Virus record (IMG/VR): IMGVR_UViG_3300044625_001067
Span: 1-64,000 of that record
DNA length: 64,000 nt
Strand: one strand, 5' to 3'
Shown: one piece after another, positions 8,324-64,000 of the stretch
Layout: the number at the start of each line of letters is the position of its first letter
Position numbering within the stretch: position 1 is the first letter of the stretch
The notes under the pieces: generated by a model
Told to the model about the DNA's origin: nothing
Database searches by the model: none
Seen by the model: the letters and a program-made list of their open reading frames with translations, nothing else
Translations under genes and position numbers: made by a program

Positions 8324-8972
8324 TAAAAAGCACTGGTTCATGTGCATGCTGGACACGAGAAAGCACATTGAGAGCTCGCTCGGGAAGCCAATGTCTCTTC
8401 CTCCTTCGATTCAAGAATGCGTGGAAGAAAGCGACTTTTCGGAGGACGCCTATGCGGACCTTGTTTCGGTTTTCAAGTTGATAAAAGGTTGCGAATACGA
8501 ACAAGTTGTACGAGAAAACACTTGCAACTTCGAAAACGACCTGTCTGATTTTTTCGTGTACACTGTATACGCGCCAGTTGGAAGTTCGGACTGGCTCTGG
8601 CAGCGCGATTGTTTCGTCACCGTGCAGATTGGTGATTCGGGTGATCCTCACTACGTTAGCTACGAGACCGCTCAAGTTTACGACATGTGCGACAACCAAC
8701 TCGCTGAGACGGGGTTCCTGAGTGACCGGTTAAGTTGGTACGCTCGCTACTTCCCGCACAGAGAATTTGAAGAAAACAGCGACGAAGCCAAGCTCCTTGA
8801 GAGAACCAACGAAGAACTCGATGCTACTTCTTCAGGCAACCCGACAAGTCGGCTCGGAGAGCTTTTCTACGCTGATCCGATATGGGTTGAAAAGTACCAA
8901 GGGTTCGTCGCAAGAGTAAAAGGGTCAAGGTTCCCAATGGTGTTTGTACCTACGGAGCCGTACTACGGCTAG
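8304..8972 (+). CDS. hypothetical protein
   Basis: Long open frame; probable start MINVILD. Confidence 0.55.
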   Translation: MINVILDKKHWFMCMLDTRKHIESSLGKPMSLPPSIQECVEESDFSEDAYADLVSVFKLIKGCEYEQVVRENTCNFENDLSDFFVYTVYAPVGSSDWLWQRDCFVTVQIGDSGDPHYVSYETAQVYDMCDNQLAETGFLSDRLSWYARYFPHREFEENSDEAKLLERTNEELDATSSGNPTSRLGELFYADPIWVEKYQGFVARVKGSRFPMVFVPTEPYYG

Positions 8973-10198: not shown

Positions 10199-11234
10199 AT
10201 AGCGAAAGTAACAATTTGGAGGGGTGGAGGAAGTGCTGCCCCAGGGTTGTTACAGCCCTCAGCACTCCTCCACTATAATTTTACCCGGTAAAGTCAATGT
10301 TAGGGGGGGTACCCCCCCACCCCCCCTCAACATTGAAAACTTTTTTCGAAGAGTGCGAAGCATTATCTTCCCCCTCGCAAACGGACGGTTTCCACCCTTT
10401 GTTTCTGCGTCGCAGAAACGGTATAATAATAGTGTGTAAACGCTGACCCATGGAGAACCCCCTCACTCAGTTTAAATATGCTTTTCAGTTTTGGGCTGCT
10501 GCTGTTTTTGGTGTGTATTCACAACACTTTTACGAGTGGGATGAGTGGTTGTTCCGCGATACAAGGTACACGCAAGAAAATCTTACGGGACGGTTCTGGC
10601 AAGAGATCAATGACGGCTGGGATTGGATGCAACCTTATATGATTGAGCACCTTGCGGAATTTAACTCGTGGGACGAACTCACCCCTTAGTCACCATCAAC
10701 CCCGAAAACGGGCGGTTTCCACCCCCTAGTTTCTGCTTGGCAGAAACGGTATAATAATAGCATACAAACGCCAGACCCAATGCCGAACTACAAAACCGTG
10801 GAAACCAGCCCCGAAGTCTGGGCGGTCATTCGTGCTCGCCACCCTGAGCTTGTGCCGTTCGGTACTGCATCATTTGAAGGCGACATGTTTACAAGTTATG
10901 GATTCCCTGGGTGTGACTTTCCGGTGATGGAAGCTCGAACCACTTGGGACATCAACCCCGAGGAGAGGTGGAAGCGCAACAACGAGCAGCATCGCTACTG
11001 GCTGTGCTTGCCCATTGAGAACCAAGATTGAGAACCCATCCGCATGGAGGCTATACTGCAACTTGAGACCAATGACTGAGGAACAATTCTACCTGCTGTG
11101 GGAGAAATTCGCCTATTCGACCCTGGTGGATTCCCTGCCCGACGATGTCCCACAAGAGTGCGAAAGACTCGGCATTTCCGTTGATTACTTCCTCTTCGAG
11201 TTTATCTAGTAGAAACTTTGTCAAAAGGTTGGAT

Positions 11235-11300
11235 GGGCGGTTAACCGCTCGCTCTGGGGCGGTTTACCGGCTTGTTTCTGCAGGGCAGAAACGGTATAGT
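11235..11300 (+). promoter_or_regulatory. composite promoter with two tandem boxes
   Basis: GGGCGGTTAACCGC and GGGCGGTTTACCGG 22 bp apart; TTGTTT 11272-77; 17-nt spacer; TATAGT 11295-300. Confidence 0.85.
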
Positions 11301-13455
11301 AGTTACAGCGAACTTCACCAGCCATGGCCGTCACCCCTTACGCCCTGCTTCCCACCTTTGAGCGGGACTACATTATGACTGAGATTCTTCGCTACAACGA
11401 CGGCAAGGAGGTCGTCAGCAAAACCGCTGTGTGCCGCCTGACTGTAAACCGCGCCGCAAGCGTTACCCACCTCCCCGGCCACAAGCACGGCAGGGTTAGC
11501 TTCTGGCTCGATCACGACCCACGCATTGTTGCCGTCTCTTACACCTACGCGCTGGCCTGACCCACGGCTCGCCGGGGCTCCCCGGCAGCAATCCACCACC
11601 AATGACACCCTCAGATTTAATCGCCATGCCTGCCACTATTCCCGCCATCACTGGCCAGCCGACCCATGAGTTTAACTTTGATCACTGCGTCTACCGGGAG
11701 TTCTGGGCTGGAGAGTACCCTTACTCTAGTCATTGCCGCGCTCAGTTATTGGGACTAGACGGAACAGTTGTAAGAGAGTTTCATTTCTCAACGACCTTCA
11801 ATCGGCTCCCGACCGATGCCGATTGGTGCAAATGGTGGGCTAGGGATTACATACCAGCCGATGCCACCATTGATACTGTCGTGGACATGTGGACGCGCCG
11901 AGGAAAGACCGCTGAAGAACTGATGGCGACCTTAGGTAAAGCCGTAGAAGCAAAAAGAGCAGCAATATCCAGAGACAAAAGACCGCTGTTTTCGTACAAA
12001 GGCAATGCTTTACGCAATGAATGGCGTAAGATTTACGAAGAAAAGAAAGAGTGCAGAAGGTTTTTGGCACATCAGGGCCATTTGCTACAGCAGTTTTTGA
12101 CAGGTGGCAAGAATTATTTGCCTGGGAGCTTTTGACCCCAACCCCCGGCTAACCCCAACCCGCCAGACGCCGTGAGCTTGGCATCCCATCCCATTGCATC
12201 TCAACCATGGCCCAGCCCATCCCCACCGTTGCCGACATCCTGGCCAGCACGTGGCTTGGCGGCGATCTCCATGAATGGAACACCGACGCTGCCGTGATCC
12301 GCATCACCCGATCCGAACTCCGCTCGGCCCTTGAGAATGCCTACGACTCACTGATGCCCAACTGGCCCGCCATGGTGGAGATTGACGATGCCTGACCCCA
12401 CCATGACCACACCATCCGAACTGTTTACGCACCCACGCCCGCGCTGTGTCGTCACAACTGTCTACAGCGATCCCGCTGTCAGCTTGACCGTTCAGGCATG
12501 GCGCCGCGAGCTATGCTCTTACTACCTGCTATTTCGGATAGCAAATCAGTATTCATTGACCCTTAACGAAACTGCGGTTTTTTATTTTTTCCGCAGATTT
12601 CCAGACTGGTATATTCAGCCTCCAGGAGGCTGGGCCAAGCACACTTGGAACCCCGCCACCGATAAGCGGGTGTCGGCACAAGCGCTCGCCGTCGTAGAGG
12701 CTTGGCTGGCCGAGCAAGAGGCCAATGCCTGACCCCACCTGGCGCGACCACTGCCGCCCAATCATTACCGCCGTGATCCAGCGGGTCGGCACCGAGGACC
12801 GCAAAACACTGCAGCTGGCTCTGGACGCTGCCTACCCCCGCGACCGTGGCCGCGTTTGCTGCTTGACAGGCAGGGACGACGCCTACGATGTCTGGTGCGA
12901 TGAGGTCAGGCGCCAGCAGCTCTCGCTTCTGGGTGCCGAATGACACCTGGTCCTACCGGTGCCGATCTCCAGCGTCGGTGCCACGCCAGGGATTAGTGGG
13001 TCGTGGTCCAAGGGCGGTTTCCCGTTTGCCCTGGGGCGGTTTACCCCTTGTTTCTGCCCCGCAGAAACGGTATAGTAGTTACAGCGAGTCAGTTCAGCAC
13101 TGGCTCAATCGCGATTTCTAACCCGACCCTTTACTCTGAAAATGGCAACCACCTACATCAACAAAGCTCAACGCCAGACCTTGATTGATCAGTTCATGGA
13201 GTGTTGGTTTGACACTGAGAGTTATTCCACCGAAGACGCCGCAGAGGAAGAGGGTCGAGAAATGCGTGCTGAACTAGAATCCCTGAACAACAGCCAACTT
13301 ATGGCTGAAATTAAGAAAAGTGAATGGTCGATCTTCACGTTAAACGGTTGTTCCATCTAAGGCGGATCCCCCGTCTCACCTTTCCCCGTGAAACACCCTA
13401 AAGTAAGTAATGTGAACTTGACCATCCACCCCTCCACCCATACCTATTAAACACC

Positions 13456-13896: not shown

Positions 13897-15497
13897 GTCT
13901 TGTGTGGGGCGGTTTCCCGTTTGCCCTAGGACGGTTTACCTCCCTGTTTCTGCAGGGCAGAAACGGTATAATAAATACAGCGAAACGACCCCGGCAGTGA
14001 CCACCCTCCAAAATCTGAGCCACGACGACACTCACAACCGTCCGACCCAGTACGAAATCGTGGTGGTTATCGACGGTGAACGGATTCTCGCTGGCTACTC
14101 GGCAAAGAAAACAAAGAAGGCTCTGCTCACCGTCGCACTCGACAACGATGATGTCCGCCTCCAAATGCTCGCAGCTCTTCCCGCCGACGACGCCTCAACC
14201 CCAACCTACACCGCTCGCAACGGGTGGGTTCTGGGCAACTCCGTCATTCGTTGGTCCGGTGGAACACTCCGTCACCCTGCCCTTAGTTCTTGACACAACC
14301 GCTTTAACTCGTTAGAACCCATTTCCAACTACCATGATTGAAGAAGCACTAGCCAGTTTAGACTGGGCACCATCCGGTTCCAAGTACATACTGGTCTCAG
14401 ACAACTCTGACGGTAGACGACTGCCGTACATTGGCCCTTTCTCTTCGCTCGCAGCCGCGTCCGACTGGCGCAGCGATGCTGAGAGGCAAGGGGTTATTTA
14501 CGCAAATCGCTACCACTTGAGAGCTCTACAGGAGCCCCAACCCCTGGAAGAATCACCGGCACTGACCAACTCTGCCGTCACTGACCTGCTAGACTATACT
14601 GACATCGGGAACGGTTACCACACTTGGCTCACCGAGGATGGCCCCATCACTGTCACTCGGGAAGAACTGCGCCGAGCTTTCGACAACGCCTACGACCCGA
14701 ACGAGCCGGACTGGGCGATGAGAGTGAAAATTGACGATTCCACTGTCCCCCTACGTTTGCTACCTTGAACTAGCATGGAAATCAACCTGCCCTACGTTCC
14801 CTTTCTGTCCTCCGACGTCCCGTTTAAGGGGAGGGTCTATCGCCCTAGGGGGCACTTTATTCAAATGCAAGTTATCGGCCCCATCTGGTGGGCTGGCGGG
14901 TACTGCTCGTCTCCCGAAATTGCTCGTGTAATTAGTGACCGTTTAAACGCCGCTTCCAAATCGACCCGTACAACATGATTCAAGCGTACGAAGACCTTTG
15001 GGGCGGTTTCCACCCCCTGTTTCTGCTCGGGAGAAACGGTAAACTAAGTGAGTTAAAAGGCATCCCACAATGACAGTCTCTGCTTCCGTGCTACTTTCAA
15101 TACTGTGTAAAGCCAAGGAGCTTGATGTTCGGGTAGTGTTTGATACCCGTGAGGAGTTCGGACGCTACAACGTAAACTTTCACTTCCCGGATCGCTACAC
15201 TGTCGATAAATGCTCCCTGAATCTCTTTAGTGAGAACATAGGGGAGGTAACCTTTGAGCAGGTGGCAGAAAGCCTCCTTTTAAGAGAAGATTCGCTGAGG
15301 CAAATAGAGCTGGACAGACAAGACAGCGAGAGGAAAGAGCTTCTGGAGCGGTTAAACCTATCCGACAAAGACAAGGAGTTACTTGGGTTGCAATCCTTGC
15401 CTGGCCATTAGACGGCAGGGTGGGCGGTTTCCCGGCTTGCCCTTTCCGCCAAACCACGCTATGGTAGTTACGGTGAATCGACCCCATCCTGAATCTT

Positions 15498-19981: not shown

Positions 19982-20476
19982 GCGTGTTGTCCCATATGGG
20001 CGGATAACCGCTTGCTCTGGGACGGTTTACCGGCTAGTTTCTGCGTCGCAGAAACGTTATAGTAAGGGATGGAAAAGTCCCTAAGAAACTCGTCTTAACA
20101 CAATGAAAAACGTCCAACAACCTAATTTCCGCGATCTGTGCTCCAGACTCGCTGACGAGCTGCATAAAGAGACGTGTCTCTACCCCGGTTACGCTAGAGA
20201 GTCGGTGAGAGAGGCTGATAAGGCCCTCAAACAACCTGCTCTTCAGGTGAGCCGTGGGGAAGTATCTTCCCTATACTATGAACACGGTGGTAATGACTGG
20301 TATGAGGGGTTTTCCTGTGAAGACTTCGAGCGTGCTGTAGGCACTCTTCTGGCTCGTCTCGGTTATGTTGTAGTTTAAGAAGACGGATAACCGCCCCTGA
20401 AGTGGGCGGTTTACACCCTTATTCCACTCAGGCGAAACGGTATAGTAAAGGGGTGGAAAACACCGCCCCCAACCCG

Positions 20477-20731
20477 ATGCAAACTCCTGAAGCCGTTGCC
20501 CTCGCCGCCACCATTCAGCTTCATGGCGAAATGCTCAACGACGAGTGCTTCGCCGGCTAAGATGGTGACAAGGATGCTTTCGACATTCTCTACCAAGAAG
20601 TCTTCGTGATTGCACGCGACGATGTTACTCTTGAAGTTGACCCGGTTAACCAAGTTGTTGACATGTTTTACGAGTACCATTCGGAAATCTGCGACGGCAC
20701 ACGCGAGGTCGACTGGTACCTCTATCGCTGA
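20477..20731 (+). pseudogene. small ORF interrupted by in-frame TAA
   Basis: ATG 20477 follows promoter copy at 20383; TAA at 20558-60; frame stays open and protein-like to TGA 20729-31. Confidence 0.6.
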
Positions 20732-37497: not shown

Positions 37498-37661
37498 CGG
37501 ACTCATATGGGAAATCACCCTGAGCGACTTTGCTCCTTGTGCCATTGCGCTGTAACGGATTCACCCATGAAATGTCCCTAAGCCACTTTACTTCCTGAGT
37601 CCCTTGCGCTATACTGATTTCACCTGGGAATTTACTCCTGAGTCCCTTGCGCTGTAGCGGA
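37445..37661 (+). repeat. degenerate ~58-bp tandem repeat (about 3.7 units)
   Basis: Core TGAGCGACTTTGCTCCTTG...TTGCGCTGTAACGGA repeated from the thg1 3' end to tRNA-Gly. Confidence 0.75.
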
Positions 37662-40787: not shown

Positions 40788-40831
40788 GGCGGGAAACCGC
40801 CCTTTACTCCCCTAGCCAAACAAGCTATAGT
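40788..40831 (+). promoter_or_regulatory. composite promoter 2 of RNA island
   Basis: GGCGGGAAACCGCC box, TTTACT, TATAGT 40826-31. Confidence 0.8.
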
Positions 40832-40911: not shown

Positions 40912-41006
40912 ACACTGGTGAGTACACAGGTTGGGGTACGACCAAGTGCTACCGTGGTCGGGCTTTTACCCTGGTAAGGGGTGAAAGAGTTGGTAGCAGC
41001 CAGTGT
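40912..41006 (+). ncRNA. pseudoknotted multi-stem RNA of unknown class
   Basis: ACACTGG/CCAGTGT closing stem; three internal hairpins; loop TGCTACCG complementary to TGGTAGCA. Confidence 0.55.
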
Positions 41007-41017
41007 TAAGACCAAAA

Positions 41018-41140
41018 GGTTAACGAGAGAGAAAGATCACGGTTCGAGTCCGGATCCAGCAGTAATTGAGCCCGTCAAGGGCATTCCTAGCCATGGTTGC
41101 GGGGTAGTTTAAGTGGCCTAAAAACATTCTCTCTTTTACC
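41018..41140 (+). ncRNA. circularly permuted tRNA-like element 1
   Basis: Order: GAGAGAG, T arm (TTCGAGT), acceptor closed by a linker, TA-GTTT..AAAC D arm, TTCTCTC. Confidence 0.65.
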
Positions 41141-41219
41141 CAGGGGACAATGGCGGTCGCGGCTAACGCCAAGTGCGACTAAGCCACGTCTCATGACCCC
41201 GGTTGATCCCGGGGTATAC

Positions 41220-41293
41220 GCTGCAGTAGGCGAATTGGTTAAGCCGCCAGACTTTCAATCTGGAAATTACGGGTTCAAACCCCGTCTGCAGTA
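41220..41293 (+). tRNA. tRNA-Glu(TTC)
   Basis: GCTGCAG/CTGCAGT; CCAGA-CTTTCAA-TCTGG; ACGGG-TTCAAAC-CCCGT. Confidence 0.9.
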
Positions 41294-41422
41294 TGACCCT
41301 GTGGTTTAACCCATGGGGCACCCTGTGGTTCAACCCGTAGGGCAAATCCACCTTGCCTCTACAGATCGGGAGATAGCATCAAAACGAGTCATCGTGGAAG
41401 AGGGAAGAACTCGGTGGGTTCC

Positions 41423-41548
41423 TGACTAAGAGTGTTAGAGGTTAGCATGTTCCTTTGGGCGAAAACAGTAAGATAGAACGAAGGCCAAGTTCCGTATCTG
41501 TGAGTAGTTTTGACAGAGGAGGTTGAGGTTCGAATCCTCGTTAGTCAC
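41423..41548 (+). ncRNA. tRNA-like RNA with ~50-nt hairpin insertion in the anticodon arm (Gln-like)
   Basis: TGACTAA/TTAGTCA acceptor, D arm, TGAGG-TTCGAAT-CCTCG T arm; extended anticodon arm. Confidence 0.7.
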
Positions 41549-41695
41549 TTGCCCCTCGGCAACAGGGTGCTTCGTTATGCCCTGACCATCAAACATAACG
41601 CCGCTTCTCGTGACGGTAAGATCGAGACTCTGCATCCCTGAGTAACGGGACGCTTAATGTTTGTCGGACAAACATCCTTGGCAACTCAACAGGTT

Positions 41696-41790
41696 AAGAC
41701 GTTGCGAGTCACAGCTGGTAACTGTGACAGGGGACAAGTCTGGTTGACGTTCTGTGCACAAGAACCACGGGTTCGATTCCCGGCGTCTTC
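41696..41790 (+). ncRNA. tRNA-like RNA with extra arm (Cys GCA-like loop)
   Basis: AAGACGT/GCGTCTT; GTCACAG/CTGTGAC hairpin; GTTCT-GTGCACA-AGAAC; CGGG-TTCGATT-CCCG. Confidence 0.6.
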
Positions 41791-41816
41791 GTTGGTTTGC
41801 TTTCGCAAACCCTTAC

Positions 41817-41865
41817 TTCCGCTCTTCTGAGGCCGAAAGCCACGGGGTTCGAATCCCGGCGGAAA
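41817..41865 (+). ncRNA. miniature tRNA-like element (acceptor + T arm, GAAA hairpin)
   Basis: TTCCGC/GCGGAA; GGC-CGAAA-GCC; GGG-TTCGAAT-CCC. Confidence 0.55.
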
Positions 41866-42097
41866 CTGCTCTAAGGGGCAATCACAGGCAAACGCGAGAG
41901 AAATTATGGACAATAGAGCCCGAGGATTTCTCGGATACTCACCCGGCTCCCCTTCGGGTCCCTTCAAGGGATAATTCCTTAGCCTCATAATGTGAGGGTC
42001 CTTTGGGCAACAGTTTCGATTGATCGTAAACCCTCGTTTGGAAAGTGCGGCGCATAACTAAGTCCGTGCGGAAGACAGCAGTGGGTGACCGTCGAAG

Positions 42098-42177
42098 TTG
42101 AAACGGAGCTGGACGCTCGTACTCGTACAGGATGGCCTCTGTGCGAGCAATGCAGGTTCGATCCCTGCCGTTTTAAT
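42098..42177 (+). ncRNA. D-stemless tRNA-like element with long anticodon-position stem
   Basis: TTGAAACG/CGTTTTAA; GCTCGTAC/GTGCGAGC; GCAGG-TTCGATC-CCTGC. Confidence 0.6.
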
Positions 42178-42244
42178 TGCCCAAGATAAACCCACTGGCT
42201 AACCCTGGTACGGTTAATCGCAAGGCAATCCCTCCGGAGGGGAA

Positions 42245-42309
42245 GGTGCGTGGCTTAGTGGTAAAGCTGGTCCGAAAGGCTGAACGCAGGTTCGATTCCT
42301 GCCGCACCA
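42245..42309 (+). ncRNA. tRNA-like element with GAAA tetraloop replacing the anticodon loop
   Basis: GGTGCG/CGCACC; canonical D arm GCTT-AGTGGTA-AAGC; GCAGG-TTCGATT-CCTGC. Confidence 0.7.
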
Positions 42310-42310
42310 C

Positions 42311-42951
42311 TTGGAGTGAGATTCGAGAGTTAGTCGCCTCGATACCCGCAGGGGTATAGCTTAAAGACTCCCTAACAGAGCGCACTCAACCCCAGTTATC
42401 CCACGGCGCTGGTCGCATAGCCGAAGGCACTTCCTGAAGAAGGAACAACTACCGCTGGCGGACCTGGGGCGGTTTGTTGTAAAACAATTGGTATTCAGTA
42501 GCGTCTCGCGAGCAACGCTGATACAACCAGGTCCTGCGACCCTAAGTTAATGCCTCCACGTGGCAGGGTTGGTAACTTTCCCTTTAGGAAAGGCCAAATT
42601 AACAGGGAATTTCTCATCCCGTACGTGAGAAACCTCGACCAAGGTGAGAAGTCAGTCGCTCAGGACACTCTGGGAAAACCTGCCAAGGGTTAATTTGGAC
42701 GGAACTTTCATCCGTTACGTGAAAGCTCTCCTTTGGATTTCGAAGGAATCCGGGGTACTTTGACAGCGATTTGCTCTAAAACCTTCAACAGGTCTGGCAA
42801 TTCGGTGAGTTTGATTCCCGCTTACTCCATTGGATTTTCTCAAATCCGACACCCCCAGAAAAGTTTACTACCTTTGGTAGTGACTATAATGGATGAGTCA
42901 CTGCTCTGCTTGGGCGAAAGCTAAACGGATAACCGGACCGTTCAGCTCCAA
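42311..42951 (+). ncRNA. large ornate structured RNA (~640 nt) with several pseudoknots
   Basis: Terminal stem TTGGAGTGA/TCAGCTCCAA and many long-range complementarities (see findings); no credible ORF. Confidence 0.7.
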
Positions 42952-43208
42952 GTATCAGGTTTCCCCTGGGTTAGCACCCAGGGGTTTAACCCATTCTAGA
43001 AACTGGGATCGTAAGGAAAACGTCGTTAAGTTCCCGTCACTGCCCTGTAAACAGACGTTAACATGGGGTGCTTTCTTGAGGGCTGTCTTGCCGCTGGTAT
43101 CGCTAGATGAAACACTCTTACCGGCCAGTTTGCGAGCCCTGCTGAAAGCTTAGTCCCCTCTGTGCGGCATTGGTTCGCCAAGGCCACGGGATTAGCCTCC
43201 CGTGCTAC

Positions 43209-43284
43209 CCAGGTATCGCCTAACTTGGCTATGGCACCTCTTTCGGGAAGAGGAATAGTCCCGGTTCAAATCCGGGTGCCTGGA
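43209..43284 (+). tRNA. tRNA-Pro(CGG)
   Basis: CCAGGTA/TGCCTGG; CCTCT-TTCGGGA-AGAGG; CCCGG-TTCAAAT-CCGGG. Confidence 0.9.
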
Positions 43285-43355
43285 TGTCCCACTAACGTGG
43301 GAGCAAGGAAACTTGATAACTAAGTAACTATTCTGTCGCAAATGCGATAGCATTT

Positions 43356-43429
43356 GGGGTCTTAGCTCATTTTGGTAGAGCATCTCTGTGGCACGGAGAA
43401 GGTGACCGGTTCGATCCCGGTAGATTCCA
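43356..43429 (+). tRNA. tRNA-Ala(GGC)
   Basis: GGGGTCT/AGATTCC with G3:U70; loop GTGGCAC. Confidence 0.92.
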
Positions 43430-43457
43430 CTTTGTGGGCAACCACAAACTAGAGCAA

Positions 43458-43531
43458 GGGCTTACATGTACCAAGGCTGGCGAGATTGCTTTGCAAGCAA
43501 ACTGTGAAGAGTTCGATTCTCTTTGGGTCCA
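43458..43531 (+). tRNA. tRNA-Ala(TGC), atypical D arm
   Basis: GGGCTTA/TGGGTCC with G3:U70; loop TTTGCAA; AAGAG-TTCGATT-CTCTT. Confidence 0.75.
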
Positions 43532-43552
43532 CTTTCGCTAACGCGAAAACAC

Positions 43553-43668
43553 GAGGGAGAAATGCCGGTTCAAGTCCGGCTCTGGGGGTCCTATAACGTG
43601 GGGTCCTGGGTAGTTTAACTGGTGCCAAGGACTTGTTATCAGTACGCACAAGTCCAAAAACTTCTTTC
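43553..43668 (+). ncRNA. circularly permuted tRNA-like element 2, with hairpin inserted in the D loop
   Basis: GAGGGAG, GCCGG-TTCAAGT-CCGGC, closed acceptor hairpin, TA-GTTT-AACTGGT..[GGACTTGT/ACAAGTCC]..AAAC, TTCTTTC. Confidence 0.7.
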
Positions 43669-43674
43669 CCACAA

Positions 43675-43747
43675 CCCCTCATAGTGTAGCGGCCAAGCAC
43701 GCACCTCTGTCTAAGGTGTATCACGGGTTCAAATCCCGTTGAGGGGG
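43675..43747 (+). tRNA. tRNA-Asp(GTC)
   Basis: CCCCTCA/TGAGGGG; CACCT-CTGTCTA-AGGTG; G73. Confidence 0.92.
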
Positions 43748-43783
43748 TTATTCCGAGGGGTGGCCACCCCAATGACGAATAAA

Positions 43784-43843
43784 GCCAGAGTCCCTGGATA
43801 GGGAAGAGTCGCGACAACGGGGTTCGAATCCCCAGCTCTGGTG
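43784..43843 (+). ncRNA. tRNA-like element lacking an anticodon arm
   Basis: GCCAGAG/CTCTGGT; CCCT-GGAT-AGGG; stub GTCGCGAC; GGGG-TTCGAAT-CCCC. Confidence 0.6.
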
Positions 43844-43860
43844 TTGACGCCCTGGATTGA

Positions 43861-43925
43861 GCGGTTAACCGTTTGCTCCGGGACGGTTTCCCGCCCTTTC
43901 ACCTTTCTGCGAAACGGGTTATAGT
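43861..43925 (+). promoter_or_regulatory. composite promoter 3 of RNA island
   Basis: GCGGTTAACCG and ACGGTTTCCCG boxes, TATAGT 43920-25. Confidence 0.8.
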
Positions 43926-44070
43926 AAAAGGGTGGTTACGGGAGTTTCACTCTCGGCCCCGAACGCTGCGGTTAGGTCTCTGCGTTAGTGAGACTGGCAG
44001 GAGCCCGCCTCCCAGGGCGATGCTTAAGAGCTAGACCCCTTTCTCTGGTTCCCGGAGAAAGATTCCCCGA

Positions 44071-44120
44071 TCCAACTGGTGGTTTGCCTCCGGCAAAGCA
44101 GGTTCGAGTCCTGCCTTGGA
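44071..44120 (+). ncRNA. miniature tRNA-like element
   Basis: TCCAA/TTGGA; CTGGTGG D-loop remnant; TTTGCC/GGCAAA; GCAGG-TTCGAGT-CCTGC. Confidence 0.5.
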
Positions 44121-44213
44121 AATTGGTGCGAAGATCCCTAAGTCTTTATGCCATCTCGTCTCAGAATCCAGCTGTTTGCTTAGGGGCGAACGATCTCTGG
44201 TGAAAAGAGCGAG

Positions 44214-44287
44214 TCTCTCATCGACTAATTGGTAATGTCACCGCCGGGTTACTGGTGGGAATCCAGGTTCGAACCCTGGTGAGAGTG
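44214..44287 (+). tRNA. tRNA-Asn(GTT)-like with 8-nt anticodon loop lacking U33
   Basis: CTCTCA/TGAGAG; CCGCC-GGGTTACT-GGTGG; CCAGG-TTCGAAC-CCTGG; G73. Confidence 0.7.
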
Positions 44288-44316
44288 TTTGCTCTAGTGT
44301 GCTAGAGTGATTAAAA

Positions 44317-44390
44317 GCCCGAGTAACCCAGCGGAAGAGGTGCCTGACTTAAAATCAGGAAGTCGTAGGGTTCGAATCCCACCTCGGGTA
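44317..44390 (+). tRNA. tRNA-Leu(TAA), short variable loop
   Basis: GCCCGAG/CTCGGGT; CCTGA-CTTAAAA-TCAGG; A73. Confidence 0.88.
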
Positions 44391-44441
44391 TTGCTCCTTT
44401 GACCTGGGCCTGGAAGCTCAGTGAATAAGGAACAAACAATC

Positions 44442-44516
44442 GCGTATGTACCCCAACCGGAAGAGGGGCAACACTGAGACTGTTGTTATGTGGAGGTTCG
44501 ACCCCTCTCATGCGCA
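44442..44516 (+). tRNA. tRNA-Leu(GAG), short variable loop
   Basis: GCGTATG/CATGCGC; CAACA-CTGAGAC-TGTTG. Confidence 0.85.
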
Positions 44517-44589
44517 TTTTCCTTTTACCACCCTTCACATAGTGGCGGTAGCTTGGAAAGAACCCTGCGGTTGAAAACCATGGGCAAAA

Positions 44590-44660
44590 TCTCGAATCGA
44601 CTAGTGGTAGGTCGCCTGTCTCTGAAACAGGAAACTTTGGTTCGAATCCAAATTTGAGAA
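44590..44660 (+). tRNA. tRNA-Gln(CTG)
   Basis: TCTCGAA/TTTGAGA; CCTGT-CTCTGAA-ACAGG. Confidence 0.9.
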
Positions 44661-44715
44661 TAACGTTTGGGGCACATCTATGTGCCCTTGCGTACGTTTC
44701 TCGTAGAGAAACCTT

Positions 44716-44804
44716 GGAAGAGTGGTCGAGTGGCTGATGACGATTGCTTGGAAAGCAATTGAGGCGCAAAAGCGTCTCCGGAGGTTCGAATCCTCTCTCT
44801 TCCG
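44716..44804 (+). tRNA. tRNA-Ser(GGA)
   Basis: GGAAGAG/CTCTTCC; loop TTGGAAA; long variable arm; G73. Confidence 0.95.
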
Positions 44805-44862
44805 TCTCACCTGAAAGTAGTACAGCAATAGGGTAAATTATAGGAGTCAATACGTATTTACC

Positions 44863-55556: not shown

Positions 55557-57746
55557 TTTCATAACTAGAATAGCGTCCCACAGAGGGTAGTAAACCTTAT
55601 CTGCAAGGCACCCCTTACTTAAGCCTTCTCTCCCGCGTCATTAGACTCCCCTCTCACCCACTCAACCCAGTAGTCTCGTGGGCACCGCATGTTTGCCATT
55701 GTTGTCTTAGCGGGAAGAAAGCATCCGCACTCGTCACAGGTTGAACTTTTTTCTTCAAAGGATCCGCACACATTGCTCTCACAAAGTGCGAGTCGGTCCT
55801 TTGCCACTTGGCGAGGGGCAAACGACGGATCTTCCAGCATTCGTTTAGCTGTGTCAATCAAGGATGCGCCGAAACTTCTGCGGCAACATTCTGGCTCTTT
55901 ATTCGTTTGTTCCAACGTTGCTCTCTGCGAAAGGTCTGTATAGTGTAATTTACCCGGATCAGTCCGTAAAGGTGCACAAGACCGAGAGATGCTTGTACAA
56001 AATACTCTCATCGAAAAACCGGTACTCCGACGAAAACTCTTCTCTCTGCTGAAAGTGTTCGAGCTCTTTTAAGGTGGCCCTAACGACCGGGCAGTCTGAA
56101 ACGTAATCCTTGTACCAGAAAGTGTTGAACTTTGGAATGTACTTCCACCTATCTCCGTGCGGAATCCAAACTTTTTCAAATTCTATTTCGAATAGCGAGA
56201 ACGGGTCGTCCCATTCTTCAGGATTTACGACGCTTAACTGCTGAACGATATCTTTCGTATCGTCGAGAAACCACTGAAAGTGCGTGCTGTTGGGGGATAC
56301 TTTCCATGTTAGGTTGACAATAAGATAGGGGATGTCGGGAAAGTCCCCTGACTGCACCGAAACCTTCTCGGCCACCCTTAAGCTAGTGATTGCCGTTTTC
56401 ATCTTCCTCCGAAATGTTTGAAACTTCCGGGGTTCCCCTCAAAAGAAGCGTCTCAAAGAATTCGACCACGTCTATGCGATTAGTCGTATCAACTCCCGCC
56501 GTGCGGCAGAACTCGATTGCTTCGTACTCAAAGGGGAAGAACGGGTTGGACAAGCCGAAAGATTTAAGTCTCTGCAGGAAACAGTCTCGGATTGCGCCAT
56601 AAAGGGGCGGGAAATCGGACTCGTTAAGTTCGACGGTGCGTTCAACTTTCGACGGTGCGTTATACGTGATTTTCATACTACTCAGTGGGGTGTACTGAAT
56701 GGGAATTACGTTCAATAACTTGTTCCAGGAAAACAAGTGCTTGTTCGTCAGTGTCGAAGAAGTGGCCTGCTGCATTCGATCCGAGAAGCACCTCTCCCGC
56801 TTCTTTAGGTGTGAGAGTAAAAGCACCAACCCCTCCCATAACCTGCGCGAAGCCCGCCAGACAGTGAGTGGTCCCGCACGTGTGAAAACCTGCTTCGTTC
56901 GATGGTTCCTTCCAGAAGGACCAATCTTCGTAAGTTGTTCTGTCAGTGTCAAACCAGAGCTTGTGCCACCTCTCCATGTGGAGGTTTTTCCGGTCGCGCT
57001 CAACAATCCATAGTGCGACATGGAGGAGATTGGCTTCCTGTTGTTCGGGTGTCAACCCTCCCAAGTCTTCTACGTTTCTGTACGTGCACTCCTCTAAGGC
57101 GTCAAGGGCGAGTAGGAAATTCGCCGGGATATGCGGGAGCGGAGGGAGCCCTTGTGATGTGCACATCCGGTGAGCAACCCGAGTGGCTTCAGCTGGCGTC
57201 AGTGCTTCGGTGCAAGTTGCTGTGGTCATTGTTTCGTTCGAAAATACGTTGGTTTGTTTGGAAAAGGTGAACGGTGCGTGGTTTTCCTCGCCCAGCAAAC
57301 CTAGGGGAAAGGTTTACGCGTTACAAAGTAAGTTGAGACCCCTTGGTCGTTGCAAATGTGGAGGCTTAGGGGCCTCTCGGTTATGTACGGGTCTGCACGA
57401 ACTGAGTTACTCACCAGCTTGCACTTTTCGGCTAAGACCTTCGCTTCTTCCCTCTCAATCTCAGCGGTGCTCTCTTCGAGTCTACGACTGGCCACGCTAA
57501 CCGCACCGACCCCTAAAAGAAGTAGGCCGACTATGAAGGCTATGATCACAAAGCCAGCGACAATACCAATATACGGATTCTCAGTTTTCATACTTCGTGT
57601 CGAATGCGAAACTTCATTGAGAGGTTGGCGGTGGAAGGTAAGCTGATTAACTTTAGCGTGTGCCCGGTAAGGGATGGGGGCGGAAAACCGCCCATTCCCC
57701 TTGGTAAGATCTTGGGAGCGGGACCCTTGGGCCCGGTGCCCTAGGG

Positions 57747-59853: not shown

Positions 59854-59965
59854 TGGGACCGGCAGGACTCGAACCTGCAACCGCGCCTTTAAAAGAGGTA
59901 ATTTAATTGCTGATGTATCTTTGTCAAGATAACTTTTCGTGCTCTACCAGTTGAGCTACGGTCCC
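59854..59965 (-). tRNA. tRNA-Lys(TTT) with 39-nt insertion in the anticodon stem
   Basis: GGGACCG/CGGTCCC; CG[39 nt]CCT-CTTTTAA-AGGCG; GCAGG-TTCGAGT-CCTGC. Confidence 0.8.
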
Positions 59966-61759: not shown

Positions 61760-62137
61760 TCACTTGGTTGACCTTGCATACAAATTCGACAGTAGCAGAA
61801 GCAGAATGAGTGACAAAATGGACACAGAGCCTAAGATTACGATTGGGCTAAACACTGAGAGCCATGGCCAGGTTATTTGCCCCGTTAATTTCAACCCGAG
61901 GAGGAGACCCTGGGCTGTCATTAACGAAACTGCGAGATTCTCAAACATTAGTTATTTCTCATGCGAAAGTAGTTGAAGAATCATCCAAAGGGCTCCCAAC
62001 CCAAGTAGAAAAATTGGCACAAGGGTTGGTGAAAGCACTGTGAGCCAGGGCCAGGAAACCTGACCCGTTACTTTCATAGTCATGAATACGGTTTGCAGAA
62101 CGATGCAGAGGGCACCCGGCAATTTGATCCAGATCAT
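61760..62137 (-). CDS. two tandem paralogous small membrane proteins (61952-62137 and 61760-61948)
   Basis: 'KVTGQVSWPWLTVLSP' vs 'KLTGQITWPWLSVFSP'; first overlaps the DUF2828 stop. Confidence 0.7.
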
Positions 62138-63612
62138 GCTCCTTCAGCAAATACGGCACCGACAGCGTCGTACCTTTCAGTGTAAACAGCGTCACGCATA
62201 GCCCCTACAGGCGTAATTACCCCGCCAGTAAGCACAGCTTTCAGGATTGAAGGGCTGCACCCGGAGACCAGGCAAGTTCCCGTGTCGTGCATTTTCATAG
62301 GTACGTTGCCGCTAGAGTTAACATTCCAGAAGACAAGTTCCGGCAAGGAATACCCAGCTTGAGCGTACTTGATTCGCACCGCCTCAAAGTTTGTCACTGA
62401 GTTGTTTCTGCAGCAGGAATCAAACTGCATGTCTGAGACAATGATGAGCTTGCGCGGCATTTCCCCCTCAGGAATATGGTTCATCGTGGCGGTAGCCAAC
62501 ACAAGATTGAAGACTGCTTGCAGGTCTGTATTCGCACCCCAGTCGGCCCGGCTAAGGTTACGAACACGCTCAGCAACGTTTCTCCCTGTAACCGACTGCA
62601 ACTGCGGTCTTCCGGAGAAGGTTAGGAACTTATCCTTCCATGCCCCGGTGTTACGCTCAGCGATGTACATCGCCAGCGAGATTGAAACCGCCATGGGCAT
62701 GCCGCCGTTATTTCCCATTGATCCTGAGACGTCGGCAATTACCAGGCCGTTCAGCTGCTCTCCTTCCATGTAGTTGGGTAGAGCCTCCCACATTAAGTTT
62801 AGAGTCTGATCGCTCCTCTCACCCCCGTAAAGGTACTTGTGCACGATCTCGTAAGGGTAGATCGTACCGGCATTGATTTTTGCCTCACCTTTCTCTACCG
62901 AGTCAAGGTAGGATTGGTAGCGGTCGCCGTCGCGCTTGGCGAAAGCTTTACGATACATGAAGCCTGCCCGAGAAGGCAACTTGCTATAGTCAATGCTTTC
63001 CCACTCACGGGCACACATTGGCTGCTCAACAATCTTGACTTGTGACCTGAGGGCAGTCAGTGCCTTGCGGTACTGCCTCTCGGTCCAACCCATTGCTTCG
63101 GCAATTTTTCGGCCAATCCTCTTAGAGTCCTGGCTGGAAGCGTTAATGGAAGGCAGCCACTTTGCCAGAAGTGAAACTGACTTTCCAACTTCCGTATTTA
63201 GGTCGGCGTTCAGTTGTGCCTTAATTGCTTCGAGTGCGATGCCCCAAACTAAGGTACCGTCAAGGGCTACCACATCATCCCAGCGACCGTACTGTGGAAT
63301 CAGGCTAACTAGCCTGGCACCAATTGCAGCATCATTTCGAACCAGCTCCTTGAAAACTTCTCGAAAGATCTTTCGCTCTCCCTGGCCCCCACGAATGTCG
63401 CGTGCCCAAAACAAGATTCGAGTTGCGGTCTCAGGGTCTTCTGCGTAGGCAAGGTTGAACAGTCGAGTTGCTTCGCTGATTTTGTCACGGCAAGCTGCAA
63501 TCTTTCCAAAAAGGTCCAGGCACTTAGACTCGGTGGACTTGTATGCCTTTGCACCGTTTGCAGTGGTAGTTTGGTTAAACTCGTTTTCGAGTGCGTTTAA
63601 AAAGGTTGTCAT
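62134..63612 (-). CDS. DUF2828 family protein (TROVE/Ro60-like helical domain + vWA)
   Basis: 'TANGA...ST..CLDLF', 'RDIRGGQGER', 'YGRWDD', 'AKWLPS', MIDAS 'DVSGSM', 'SDMQFD', 'VFWNV', 'VSGCSP'. Confidence 0.88.
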   Translation of the reverse strand: MTTFLNALENEFNQTTTANGAKAYKSTESKCLDLFGKIAACRDKISEATRLFNLAYAEDPETATRILFWARDIRGGQGERKIFREVFKELVRNDAAIGARLVSLIPQYGRWDDVVALDGTLVWGIALEAIKAQLNADLNTEVGKSVSLLAKWLPSINASSQDSKRIGRKIAEAMGWTERQYRKALTALRSQVKIVEQPMCAREWESIDYSKLPSRAGFMYRKAFAKRDGDRYQSYLDSVEKGEAKINAGTIYPYEIVHKYLYGGERSDQTLNLMWEALPNYMEGEQLNGLVIADVSGSMGNNGGMPMAVSISLAMYIAERNTGAWKDKFLTFSGRPQLQSVTGRNVAERVRNLSRADWGANTDLQAVFNLVLATATMNHIPEGEMPRKLIIVSDMQFDSCCRNNSVTNFEAVRIKYAQAGYSLPELVFWNVNSSGNVPMKMHDTGTCLVSGCSPSILKAVLTGGVITPVGAMRDAVYTERYDAVGAVFAEGA

Positions 63613-63662: not shown

Positions 63663-64000
63663 TGCGCTATGGGTAAGGACTCGATGGTCGAATGGTGGAG
63701 GAAATCCTCAAGGGTTTCTGAGCCATCGACACCCAAGCATAGTTAAAACCTAATGCAGTAAATCCTGGGAACTACCAGGAGGCCCGGTACACGAACCTCC
63801 AGCTATAGTCCTCCTCAGGAATCGCGGGGTGGTTGAGGACTTTCTCCAGGACTTTGACTGTGTGTTCAAGGTCGGCGTAGTAATTCTCACCGTAGTCTGT
63901 CGAGCCGAAGAAGAATCCCCCTTCGGTGGGTAGGATCTCCGCAGGGTTTACTGTGTTTGTTTCCGCAGGGGTGTCCCTACTTTCGAGGAGTTTTTTGCAC

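Follow-up and report, generated by a model that had tools for sequence, protein, structure and literature searches.

Among the ribozymes described in phages, the theta ribozymes are the nearest case to the one considered here. In gut phages, these HDV-like ribozymes are associated with clusters of tRNA genes, and they have been proposed to process the 3′ end of the RNA that precedes them (PMC10879173). They are minimal and lie within ~5 nt of the 3′ end of a tRNA, often a suppressor tRNA of a recoded phage (PMC10879173). The present locus shares with them a predicted HDV-like fold, a phage genome and a link to a tRNA cluster. However, the nearest upstream tRNA-like 3′ end (42310) lies 227 nt before the predicted cut instead of within ~5 nt, P4 is full-sized, and clear stop-codon recoding is not seen. 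In the intervening segment 42311-42537, the tRNA model was unmatched at E<=10. Throughout the window (the whole stretch of DNA that was analysed, 64,000 nt), no single stop-codon reassignment gave a clear lengthening of the open reading frames.

Other described RNAs resemble parts of the locus. GOLLD and ROOL are, like the RNAs reported here, phage-encoded, pseudoknotted and located beside tRNA islands; the linker of GOLLD may hold a tRNA. In contrast to GOLLD and ROOL, the conserved units of the present locus are smaller (227, 66, 78 and 58 nt) and separable, there is no single closed fold, and a predicted self-cleaving ribozyme is included. The mascRNA on MALAT1 offers another parallel, as a cloverleaf devoid of a working anticodon arm, placed beside a longer non-coding RNA and suited to recruiting RNase P and RNase Z, by which the end of that RNA is defined. 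Here, the setting is a bacteriophage, the cloverleaf-like element stands 5′ of the RNA that it would delimit, and the 3′ end of this RNA is proposed to be made by a ribozyme. A literature search found no published description of a ribozyme combined with a 227-nt RNA in this arrangement.

The window belongs to a 277-kb freshwater jumbo phage. + strand tRNA genes called by ARAGORN fill about 41000-44860, where long ORFs are absent, and the interval 42311-42951 lies inside this + strand array. The phage encodes a Thg1-like tRNA-His guanylyltransferase, a thymidylate kinase, a 5′-3′ exonuclease, NadA and a Ro-like 'RNA-binding protein'. In its relatives, genes for Thg1, a nucleotidyltransferase of the CCA-adding type and a ligase adjoin the array, as would suit intensive processing of the tRNA type. 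We propose that the interval is a cassette of independent + strand RNA modules, released from array transcripts by tRNA-type processing and by a dedicated ribozyme; a probability of about 0.7 is given to this processing model as a whole.

The homologues on which the analysis depends were contigs encoding proteins that neighbour the array, namely the Thg1-like enzyme and a 233-aa protein downstream of the array. Searches of a phage GenBank collection, by blastn with the region and by megablast with 20 kb around it, gave no matches. Pattern scans of IMG/VR, with the twin hairpin loops, the core of tRNA-like element 2, two ribozyme-core patterns and a 5′-domain pattern, returned the source phage or chance matches only, and a scan of GTDB genomes returned chance matches only. 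One metagenome scan with the ribozyme core yielded 59 loci, 57 of them chance matches (mostly one recurrent human-gut metagenome sequence) and two near-identical relatives.

The cassette, window positions 42228-42959, was found again in other phage contigs with 71-97% identity and at the same position in the array. L022 and L023 are 97% identical over 42244-43208, and L029 and L031 are 71% identical over 42244-42959. L024, L067 and L107 are 93-97% identical and are devoid of window positions 42617-42831. L096 and L111 are further lineages, in which the middle differs, and L010 has a counterpart of 42717-42913 only, located between two tRNA-Leu genes. Altogether, the homologues span four more phage lineages; since those independent for covariation number three to four only, the covariation support is thin. 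The conserved block begins at ~42228, and upstream of this point the window differs from L022 and L029; the arrays are thus mosaic, and the block acts as a cassette in them. Its features are as follows.

42231-42242, + strand: small hairpin CCCUCCGGAGGG at the left edge of the cassette, invariant in the window, L022 and L029
42244-42310, + strand: tRNA-like element 1, with acceptor, D and T arms and an anticodon arm cut to 12 nt
42311-42537, + strand: 5′ domain, a structured RNA of ~227 nt with helices conserved across lineages
42538-42603, + strand: predicted HDV-like self-cleaving ribozyme (weak Rfam match, covariation)
42604-42751, + strand: linker with hairpins, two of which share a conserved 9-nt loop, UCC(C/G)(G/U)UACG
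42752-42829, + strand: tRNA-like element 2, which retains the acceptor stem and the T arm and has short hairpins in place of the D and anticodon arms
42832-42847, + strand: hairpin GGAUUUUCUCAAAUCC, right-hand partner of the repeat at a natural deletion
42864-42890, + strand: probable promoter (TTTACT, 15 nt, TATAAT), hexamers kept and spacer length fixed
42901-42958, + strand: local extended hairpin of 58 nt (CUG/CAG, UGCUUGG/CCAAGUA, AGCU/AGCU, AACGG/CCGUU)
42963-42984, + strand: GC-rich hairpin CCCCUGGGU-UAGC-ACCCAGGGG, then UUUAA; the stem persists in L029 and L111, where its sequence varies

In an earlier note, the same interval had been viewed as one ornate RNA of ~640 nt, closed by a stem 42311-19/42942-51, containing at least three pseudoknots and perhaps forming a new class akin to GOLLD and ROOL. 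The nine pairs of arms on which this view was built are all present at the stated coordinates, and eight of them are perfect reverse complements. Their number is nevertheless that of chance: in the 641 nt, perfect arms of 7 nt or more number 10, as compared to 10.4 +/- 3.3 in dinucleotide shuffles, and the one 10-mer arm is matched in 39/300 shuffles, so that the listed pairings are no more than expected by chance. Minimum free energy (MFE) z-scores are alike on the two strands (-3.1 for the + strand and -3.2 for the - strand) and therefore single out neither. Most helices drawn by eye from the single sequence turned out to be chance pairings, and homologues were needed to sort them. A coding role of the region was rejected, as relatives sharing 97% identity are separated by 1-nt indels and the stems show compensatory changes.

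With Rfam 15 at gathering thresholds, tRNAs alone were matched in the whole window. At E<=10 with lax filters over 41250-43250, the models of GOLLD, ROOL, OLE, RNase P, tmRNA and group I introns remained unmatched, as did those of GOLLD, ROOL and OLE in the corresponding parts of L029, L096 and L111. Hence the reluctance of the earlier note to place the RNA in GOLLD or ROOL was justified. No tmRNA was called by ARAGORN in the window, and an RNase P RNA identity was discarded as there was no model match whatsoever.

Comparison with the homologues separates two of the nine helices from the others. GGACCTGG/CCAGGTCC forms an 8-bp helix that has its own sequence in each of three lineages, once the alignment register is corrected, and ACCGC/GCGGT, which crosses it, becomes UUCGC/GCGAA in L029; together they are, as judged from these changes, one real pseudoknot. 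The other helices are broken, missing or partial in at least one lineage. GGTCGCA/TGCGACC is only partly kept and overlaps P1 of the ribozyme. ACTCA/TGAGT retains 2/5 pairs and GTTATCC/GGATAAC 4/7 pairs in L029, and partners of TGGCAGG/CCTGCCA and of the 10-bp CCAAATTAAC/GTTAATTTGG are deleted or altered. Two of the crossings seen by eye are mispairings of strands that belong to the HDV-like ribozyme predicted at 42538-42603.

The closing stem exists in the window (7/7 pairs, one of them G-U), it is part of the MFE fold of the window together with CAGAGC/GCTCTG, and 6/7 of its pairs can form in L029, L111 and L067. However, it drops to 4/7 in L022, which is 97% identical overall, through three uncompensated changes. 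CAGAGC/GCTCTG shows a C-G to U-A replacement in L029 but is broken in L111 and L096. The bases of the unconserved long-range helices are taken up by conserved local ones, GAGUG/CACUC (H1), GCUU/GAGC (H4) and the 58-nt hairpin. In L111, a G-to-A change in AGAGC strengthens H4 and breaks the long-range pair. The local hairpin also accounts for the A that replaces G at 42908 in both L029 and L111, since a G-U pair of this hairpin becomes A-U. GOLLD is likewise made of a 5′ part, a linker able to hold a tRNA and a conserved 3′ part. Yet, at the present locus, a 215-nt internal piece is dispensable and absent from close relatives, the middle is replaced in other lineages, and the interval contains a predicted self-cleaving ribozyme and a probable promoter. 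With an arm number at chance level and the defining long-range helices unconserved, a single closed molecule of ~640 nt is considered very improbable. A contact between the 5′ and 3′ parts may conceivably occur in read-through transcripts, CAGAGC/GCTCTG and the closing stem being still mostly pairable in L029 and L111. What stands of the earlier proposal is a conserved, non-coding, structured RNA region with real pseudoknots in a phage tRNA cluster.

The segment 42538-42603 is probably an HDV-like self-cleaving ribozyme that had not been recognised before; its class is known, its setting unusual. Its parts can be described as follows.

42538-43/42565-70, + strand: P1, GACCCU/AGGGUU, opened by a G-U pair
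42546-51/42598-603, + strand: P2 (pseudoknot), GUUAAU/AUUAAC, with a J1/2 of two nucleotides
42552-54/42562-64, + strand: P3, GCC/GGC around the loop L3, UCCACGU
C42556-57/G42571-72, + strand: P1.1, GG after P1 with CC of L3
42576-81/42587-92, + strand: P4, CUUUCC/GGAAAG
C42594-C-A-A, + strand: J4/2, directly before the 3′ strand of P2; C42594 is the putative catalytic C

The Rfam family HDV-F-prausnitzii (RF02682) matches 42539-42604 with 25.6 bits (E 0.043), and the L096 homologue with 19.4 bits, both below the gathering score of 44; the RF02682 model does not score P2 and P1.1 as pairs. All five helices of the HDV nested double pseudoknot (P1, P1.1, P2, P3 and P4) can be drawn in the canonical order. 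As in the HDV-like class, of which RF02682 is an example, the cleavage site is marked by a G-U pair, P3 is GC-rich and 3 bp long, the 7-nt L3 obeys UCCNCGN, GG pairs with the CC of L3 in P1.1, and J4/2 starts with C-N-R-A. The present case differs from this class by a score under the Rfam gathering threshold, by a P1 of 6 bp instead of the usual 7 (5 bp and a C-C mismatch in L029), and by a setting in the tRNA array of a jumbo phage, directly 3′ of a 227-nt structured RNA.

Across five distinct sequences, 98.3% of the pairing cells are occupied by pairs, versus 25-59% when the partners are slid by 1-3 columns. Compensatory pairs number five: three belong to P4, one to P1 (top pair U-A versus A-U) and one to P2 (U-A to C-G in L096). 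Covariation scores 0.192, versus 0.079 in shuffles, a value attained by 0/500 of them, in a comparison that contains three independent lineages only. P3, L3, P1.1, the C of J4/2 and G42538-U42570 are invariant, and every sequence has CAA, UAA or UGA after C42594, in agreement with C-N-R-A. The stretch from P2 to J1/4 has just one or two differences between the window and L029, in a cassette that is 71% identical overall. A covariance model built on the ribozyme finds exactly one copy per genome (90-98 bits), which in every case immediately follows the 5′ domain; no other significant match was present in the 449 kb searched.

From this fold, the predicted cut between 42537 and 42538 most likely sets the 3′ end of the 227-nt RNA. 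A regulatory variant may be envisaged, in which the 5′ domain would be a sensor and the pairing of GGUCGCA (42411-17) with UGCGACC (42535-41) would sequester the first four bases of P1 and turn cleavage off, with a ligand or a protein on the 5′ domain as the switch. This pairing could hinder cleavage. In favour of the variant, the helix is perfect in the window and overlaps P1 by four bases, a shifted helix GGUUAA/UUUGACC read from the alignment is possible in L029, and the 5′ domain and the ribozyme are always fused. However, the helix is weakened by uncompensated changes in L067 and L107 (GGUUAUA) and in L096 (GGUAAAA, 4/7), and no riboswitch family was matched. Furthermore, the UGCGACC strand is invariant for reasons of the ribozyme itself, so that the apparent conservation of the helix tells little. 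Such gating is considered very improbable.

The processing preferred here would delimit an RNA whose own architecture is conserved. The helices of the 5′ domain are as follows.

42314-18/42383-87, + strand: H1, closing a four-way junction
42323-27/42338-42, + strand: H2, in the four-way junction; 4/5 pairs compensatory in L029
42343-47/42352-56, + strand: H3, in the four-way junction; stems wholly different in each lineage
42359-62/42378-81, + strand: H4, in the four-way junction; loop of variable length
42392-96/42408-12, + strand: H5, following the four-way junction
42431-34/42442-45, + strand: H7, after H5
42451-55/42469-73, + strand: PK1, crossing H8; ACCGC/GCGGU versus UUCGC/GCGAA
42460-67/42527-34, + strand: H8, 8 bp in three lineages with three sequences
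42491-98/42518-24, + strand: H9, inside the H-type pseudoknot; two compensatory pairs in L096

These helices occupy the same relative positions in L029 and L096, and in L111 for the first half, with mostly changed sequences; ten local helices, the pseudoknot included, are kept in three to four lineages. RNAalifold, folds made lineage by lineage and a helix-by-helix check concur on them. The check was carried out sequence by sequence, MAFFT indels shifting the helices of L029 and L096 out of register. The four-way junction appears again when L029 and L096 are each folded by MFE. H8 can be extended to the last two bases before the cut site in the window and in L096. In L111, the first half of the domain is found alone, and no ribozyme is recognisable. 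No Rfam family was matched by the domain in any of the lineages examined (window, L029, L096 and L111), and no paralogue was detected in the window or in the relatives, each genome having one copy.

The 227-nt domain is thus presented as a candidate new RNA of narrow distribution. The further proposal of a new class, defined by a four-way junction and an H-type pseudoknot and with ends made by a tRNA mimic on the 5′ side and by a dedicated HDV-like ribozyme on the 3′ side, is put forward tentatively, with odds slightly short of even. Such a class would imply a stable RNA with a function of its own in the takeover of tRNA and translation biology by the phage. As a working guess, this RNA would be stable and would have as its partner a protein or another RNA of the tRNA and translation machinery. 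We know of no earlier HDV-like ribozyme dedicated to the maturation of a structured RNA other than a tRNA in a phage.

On the 5′ side of this domain, the Rfam tRNA match of element 1 (40.4 bits for a threshold of 29) ends at 42310, so the interval does start right after a tRNA-like element, as had been noticed. In this element, 12 nt replace the 17-nt anticodon arm. ARAGORN did not call it; with its shortened anticodon arm, this points to a tRNA-like element and not to a decoding tRNA. Its T stem covaries (GCAGG/CCUGC to GUAGG/CCUAC in L029), and its homologue in L111 is a full-length tRNA. Element 1 is probably a processing signal for RNase P and RNase Z. A Y-RNA-like identity of element 1 and its flank was rejected, YrlA scoring ~17 bits in L029 and L096 for a threshold of 69.

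On the 3′ side of the ribozyme, the linker is 79% identical in L029, with one compensatory pair in the second hairpin, and is replaced by unrelated sequence in L096 and L111. A natural deletion of 215 nt (window 42617-42831), present in three separate metagenome contigs (L024, L067 and L107), removes the linker and tRNA-like element 2 and retains the 5′ domain and the ribozyme. It breaks within the repeat GGA(A/T)TTTCTCA, located at 10741-10751 in L024. To judge by these contigs, the linker is dispensable.

In tRNAs, G3-U70 and A73 are alanine identity marks common to tRNA-Ala and tmRNA. Both positions are invariant in tRNA-like element 2, of which six sequences from five lineages were compared. 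With the acceptor of tRNA-Ala and the tRNA-like domain of tmRNA, element 2 shares the framework GGGG...CUCC-A, these two marks and a T arm; as in the tmRNA domain, an anticodon arm is missing. Compensatory changes are found at acceptor pairs 5 and 6, CCA is not encoded, and an A-C mismatch in the T stem of the window copy is absent from L022. The element thus carries the alanine identity marks, and its acceptance of alanine is putative. The L096 copy of element 2 weakly matches the tmRNA model through its tRNA-like ends (22.6 bits, below threshold); the other sub-threshold matches lie near element 1 in L096 (15.3 bits) and in L111 (7.3 bits). Unlike tmRNA, element 2 is one contiguous piece of 78 nt that has neither a message-like reading frame nor its own pseudoknots.

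Since HDV-like ribozymes remain on the 3′ product of their cleavage and have a role in 5′ processing in retrotransposons, the ribozyme might instead serve the downstream RNA. It would then give a defined 5′-OH to the piece made of ribozyme, linker and tRNA-like element 2, or insulate modules of the precursor from each other. The linker hairpins with their conserved loops, which directly follow the ribozyme and are well kept in L029, agree with this idea. However, L024, L067 and L107 have lost the linker and element 2 yet keep the ribozyme, the 5′ domain and the ribozyme are still together in L096 where the linker is replaced, and element 2 occurs without the ribozyme in L010. A downstream role is therefore regarded as unlikely, and the maturation of the upstream 227-nt RNA is preferred.

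The 3′ part of the cassette has its own local structure. The 58-nt hairpin occupies the 3′ strands of the long-range pairings drawn by eye (closing stem, GCTCTG and GGATAAC). It is the RNAalifold consensus of five sequences, with C-G to U-A changes in two lineages, G-C to U-A in one lineage and a G-U to A-U change at the base; the G-to-A change at 42908 in L029 and L111 fits this hairpin. The GC-rich hairpin 42963-42984 failed the T-run rule of the terminator scan and may be considered as a candidate weak terminator or 3′ protective hairpin. In L010, element 2 and this 3′ part are present without the 5′ domain or the ribozyme.

Upstream of the 58-nt hairpin, the hexamers of the probable promoter at 42864 are kept in L029, L111 (TATATT) and L096 (TATGCT), and the spacer varies in sequence. 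With 15 nt, this spacer is short for sigma-70. A scan for consensus promoters called the copy at 40803 and left the 42864 copy uncalled because it requires a spacer of 16-18 nt. The motif TTTACT-N14-18-TAnnnT is found six times in the window for 1.7 expected.

37587-37615, 40803-40831 and 42864-42890, + strand: copies of TTTACT-N14-18-TAnnnT
55567-55594, 63736-63762 and 8891-8920, - strand: copies of TTTACT-N14-18-TAnnnT

Three copies are just upstream of tRNA genes or of the array start, the 42864 copy is upstream of tRNA-Pro inside the cassette, and one copy precedes the Ro-like gene. From these positions, the motif looks like the promoter of the phage for its RNA genes.

The comparison shows where the modules begin and end, which helices are conserved, and that the HDV-type fold is complete; on this basis, the following course of transcription and processing is proposed. 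The array precursor would be transcribed, probably from the TTTACT-17-TATAGT promoter at 40803, and host RNase P and RNase Z would cut around tRNA-like element 1. The HDV-like ribozyme would then cleave itself between 42537 and 42538. The product would be the ~227-nt pseudoknotted RNA 42311-42537, ending with a 2′,3′-cyclic phosphate and helical up to the cut. The ribozyme would remain on the downstream piece, with the optional hairpin linker and tRNA-like element 2, a piece that would itself be freed by RNase P and RNase Z. Finally, the promoter at 42864-42890 would restart transcription and yield the 58-nt leader hairpin and the downstream tRNAs. We infer this scheme from the anatomy of the locus, in the light of existing knowledge on HDV-like ribozymes and tRNA-like processing signals.

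The locus thus offers a probable self-cleaving ribozyme in the tRNA array of a jumbo phage, with a role other than tRNA trimming. It would be a concrete case where phages may excise defined non-coding RNAs from tRNA-array precursors, with tRNA mimics and a ribozyme as punctuation. It also draws attention to a small conserved pseudoknotted RNA without a known family and to a tRNA mimic with alanine identity marks. Both the 227-nt RNA and element 2 are short enough for direct biochemistry and structure determination.

Several further observations concern the array and its surroundings. In addition to the called tRNA genes, T-arm-like sequences GGTTCGAnnCC without an ARAGORN call are found at 41029-41053, 41511-41537, 41762-41794, 41836-41858 and 42147-42179, and further on at 43555-43579, 43811-43833, 44093-44125 and 44258-44290, which indicates an array with numerous degenerate or non-canonical tRNA-like elements. 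The 24-nt repeat unit ACCCTGTGGTTTAACCCATGGGGC and its variants are located at 41296-41343 (two tandem copies directly after tRNA-Glu), at 42976-42999 (after the cassette) and at 44562-44585 (before tRNA-Gln). Upstream of 42228, the window contains other tRNA-like pieces, unrelated to the sequence found there in L022 and L029, where tRNA-Pro(tgg) adjoins the cassette (13933-14008 and 15272-15347, respectively). Window positions 42152-42228 are 85-87% identical to sequence of L009 and L010 whose start falls within the 3′ end of 'tRNA-???' calls. The array blocks conserved with the window come in a different order in L010, where a permuted tmRNA is called by ARAGORN at 20218-20521.

Outside the array, the Rfam tRNA model matches 112 nt at 59854-59965 on the - strand (48.5 bits), with no ARAGORN call; this may be a tRNA with an insertion or an intron. 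On the same strand, 62134-63612 encodes a protein of 492 aa that belongs to DUF2828/DUF7788 (PHROG 850, 'RNA-binding protein'), a family annotated as Ro-like in other phages. Together with the weak matches to YrlA, a Y-RNA-like family, its presence gives a hint that this protein may bind some of the tRNA mimics. Finally, a photosystem reaction-centre gene (Photo_RC, 11079-11525) is present in the relative L094, whose Thg1 is 73% identical; this suggests cyanobacterial hosts for this group of phages.
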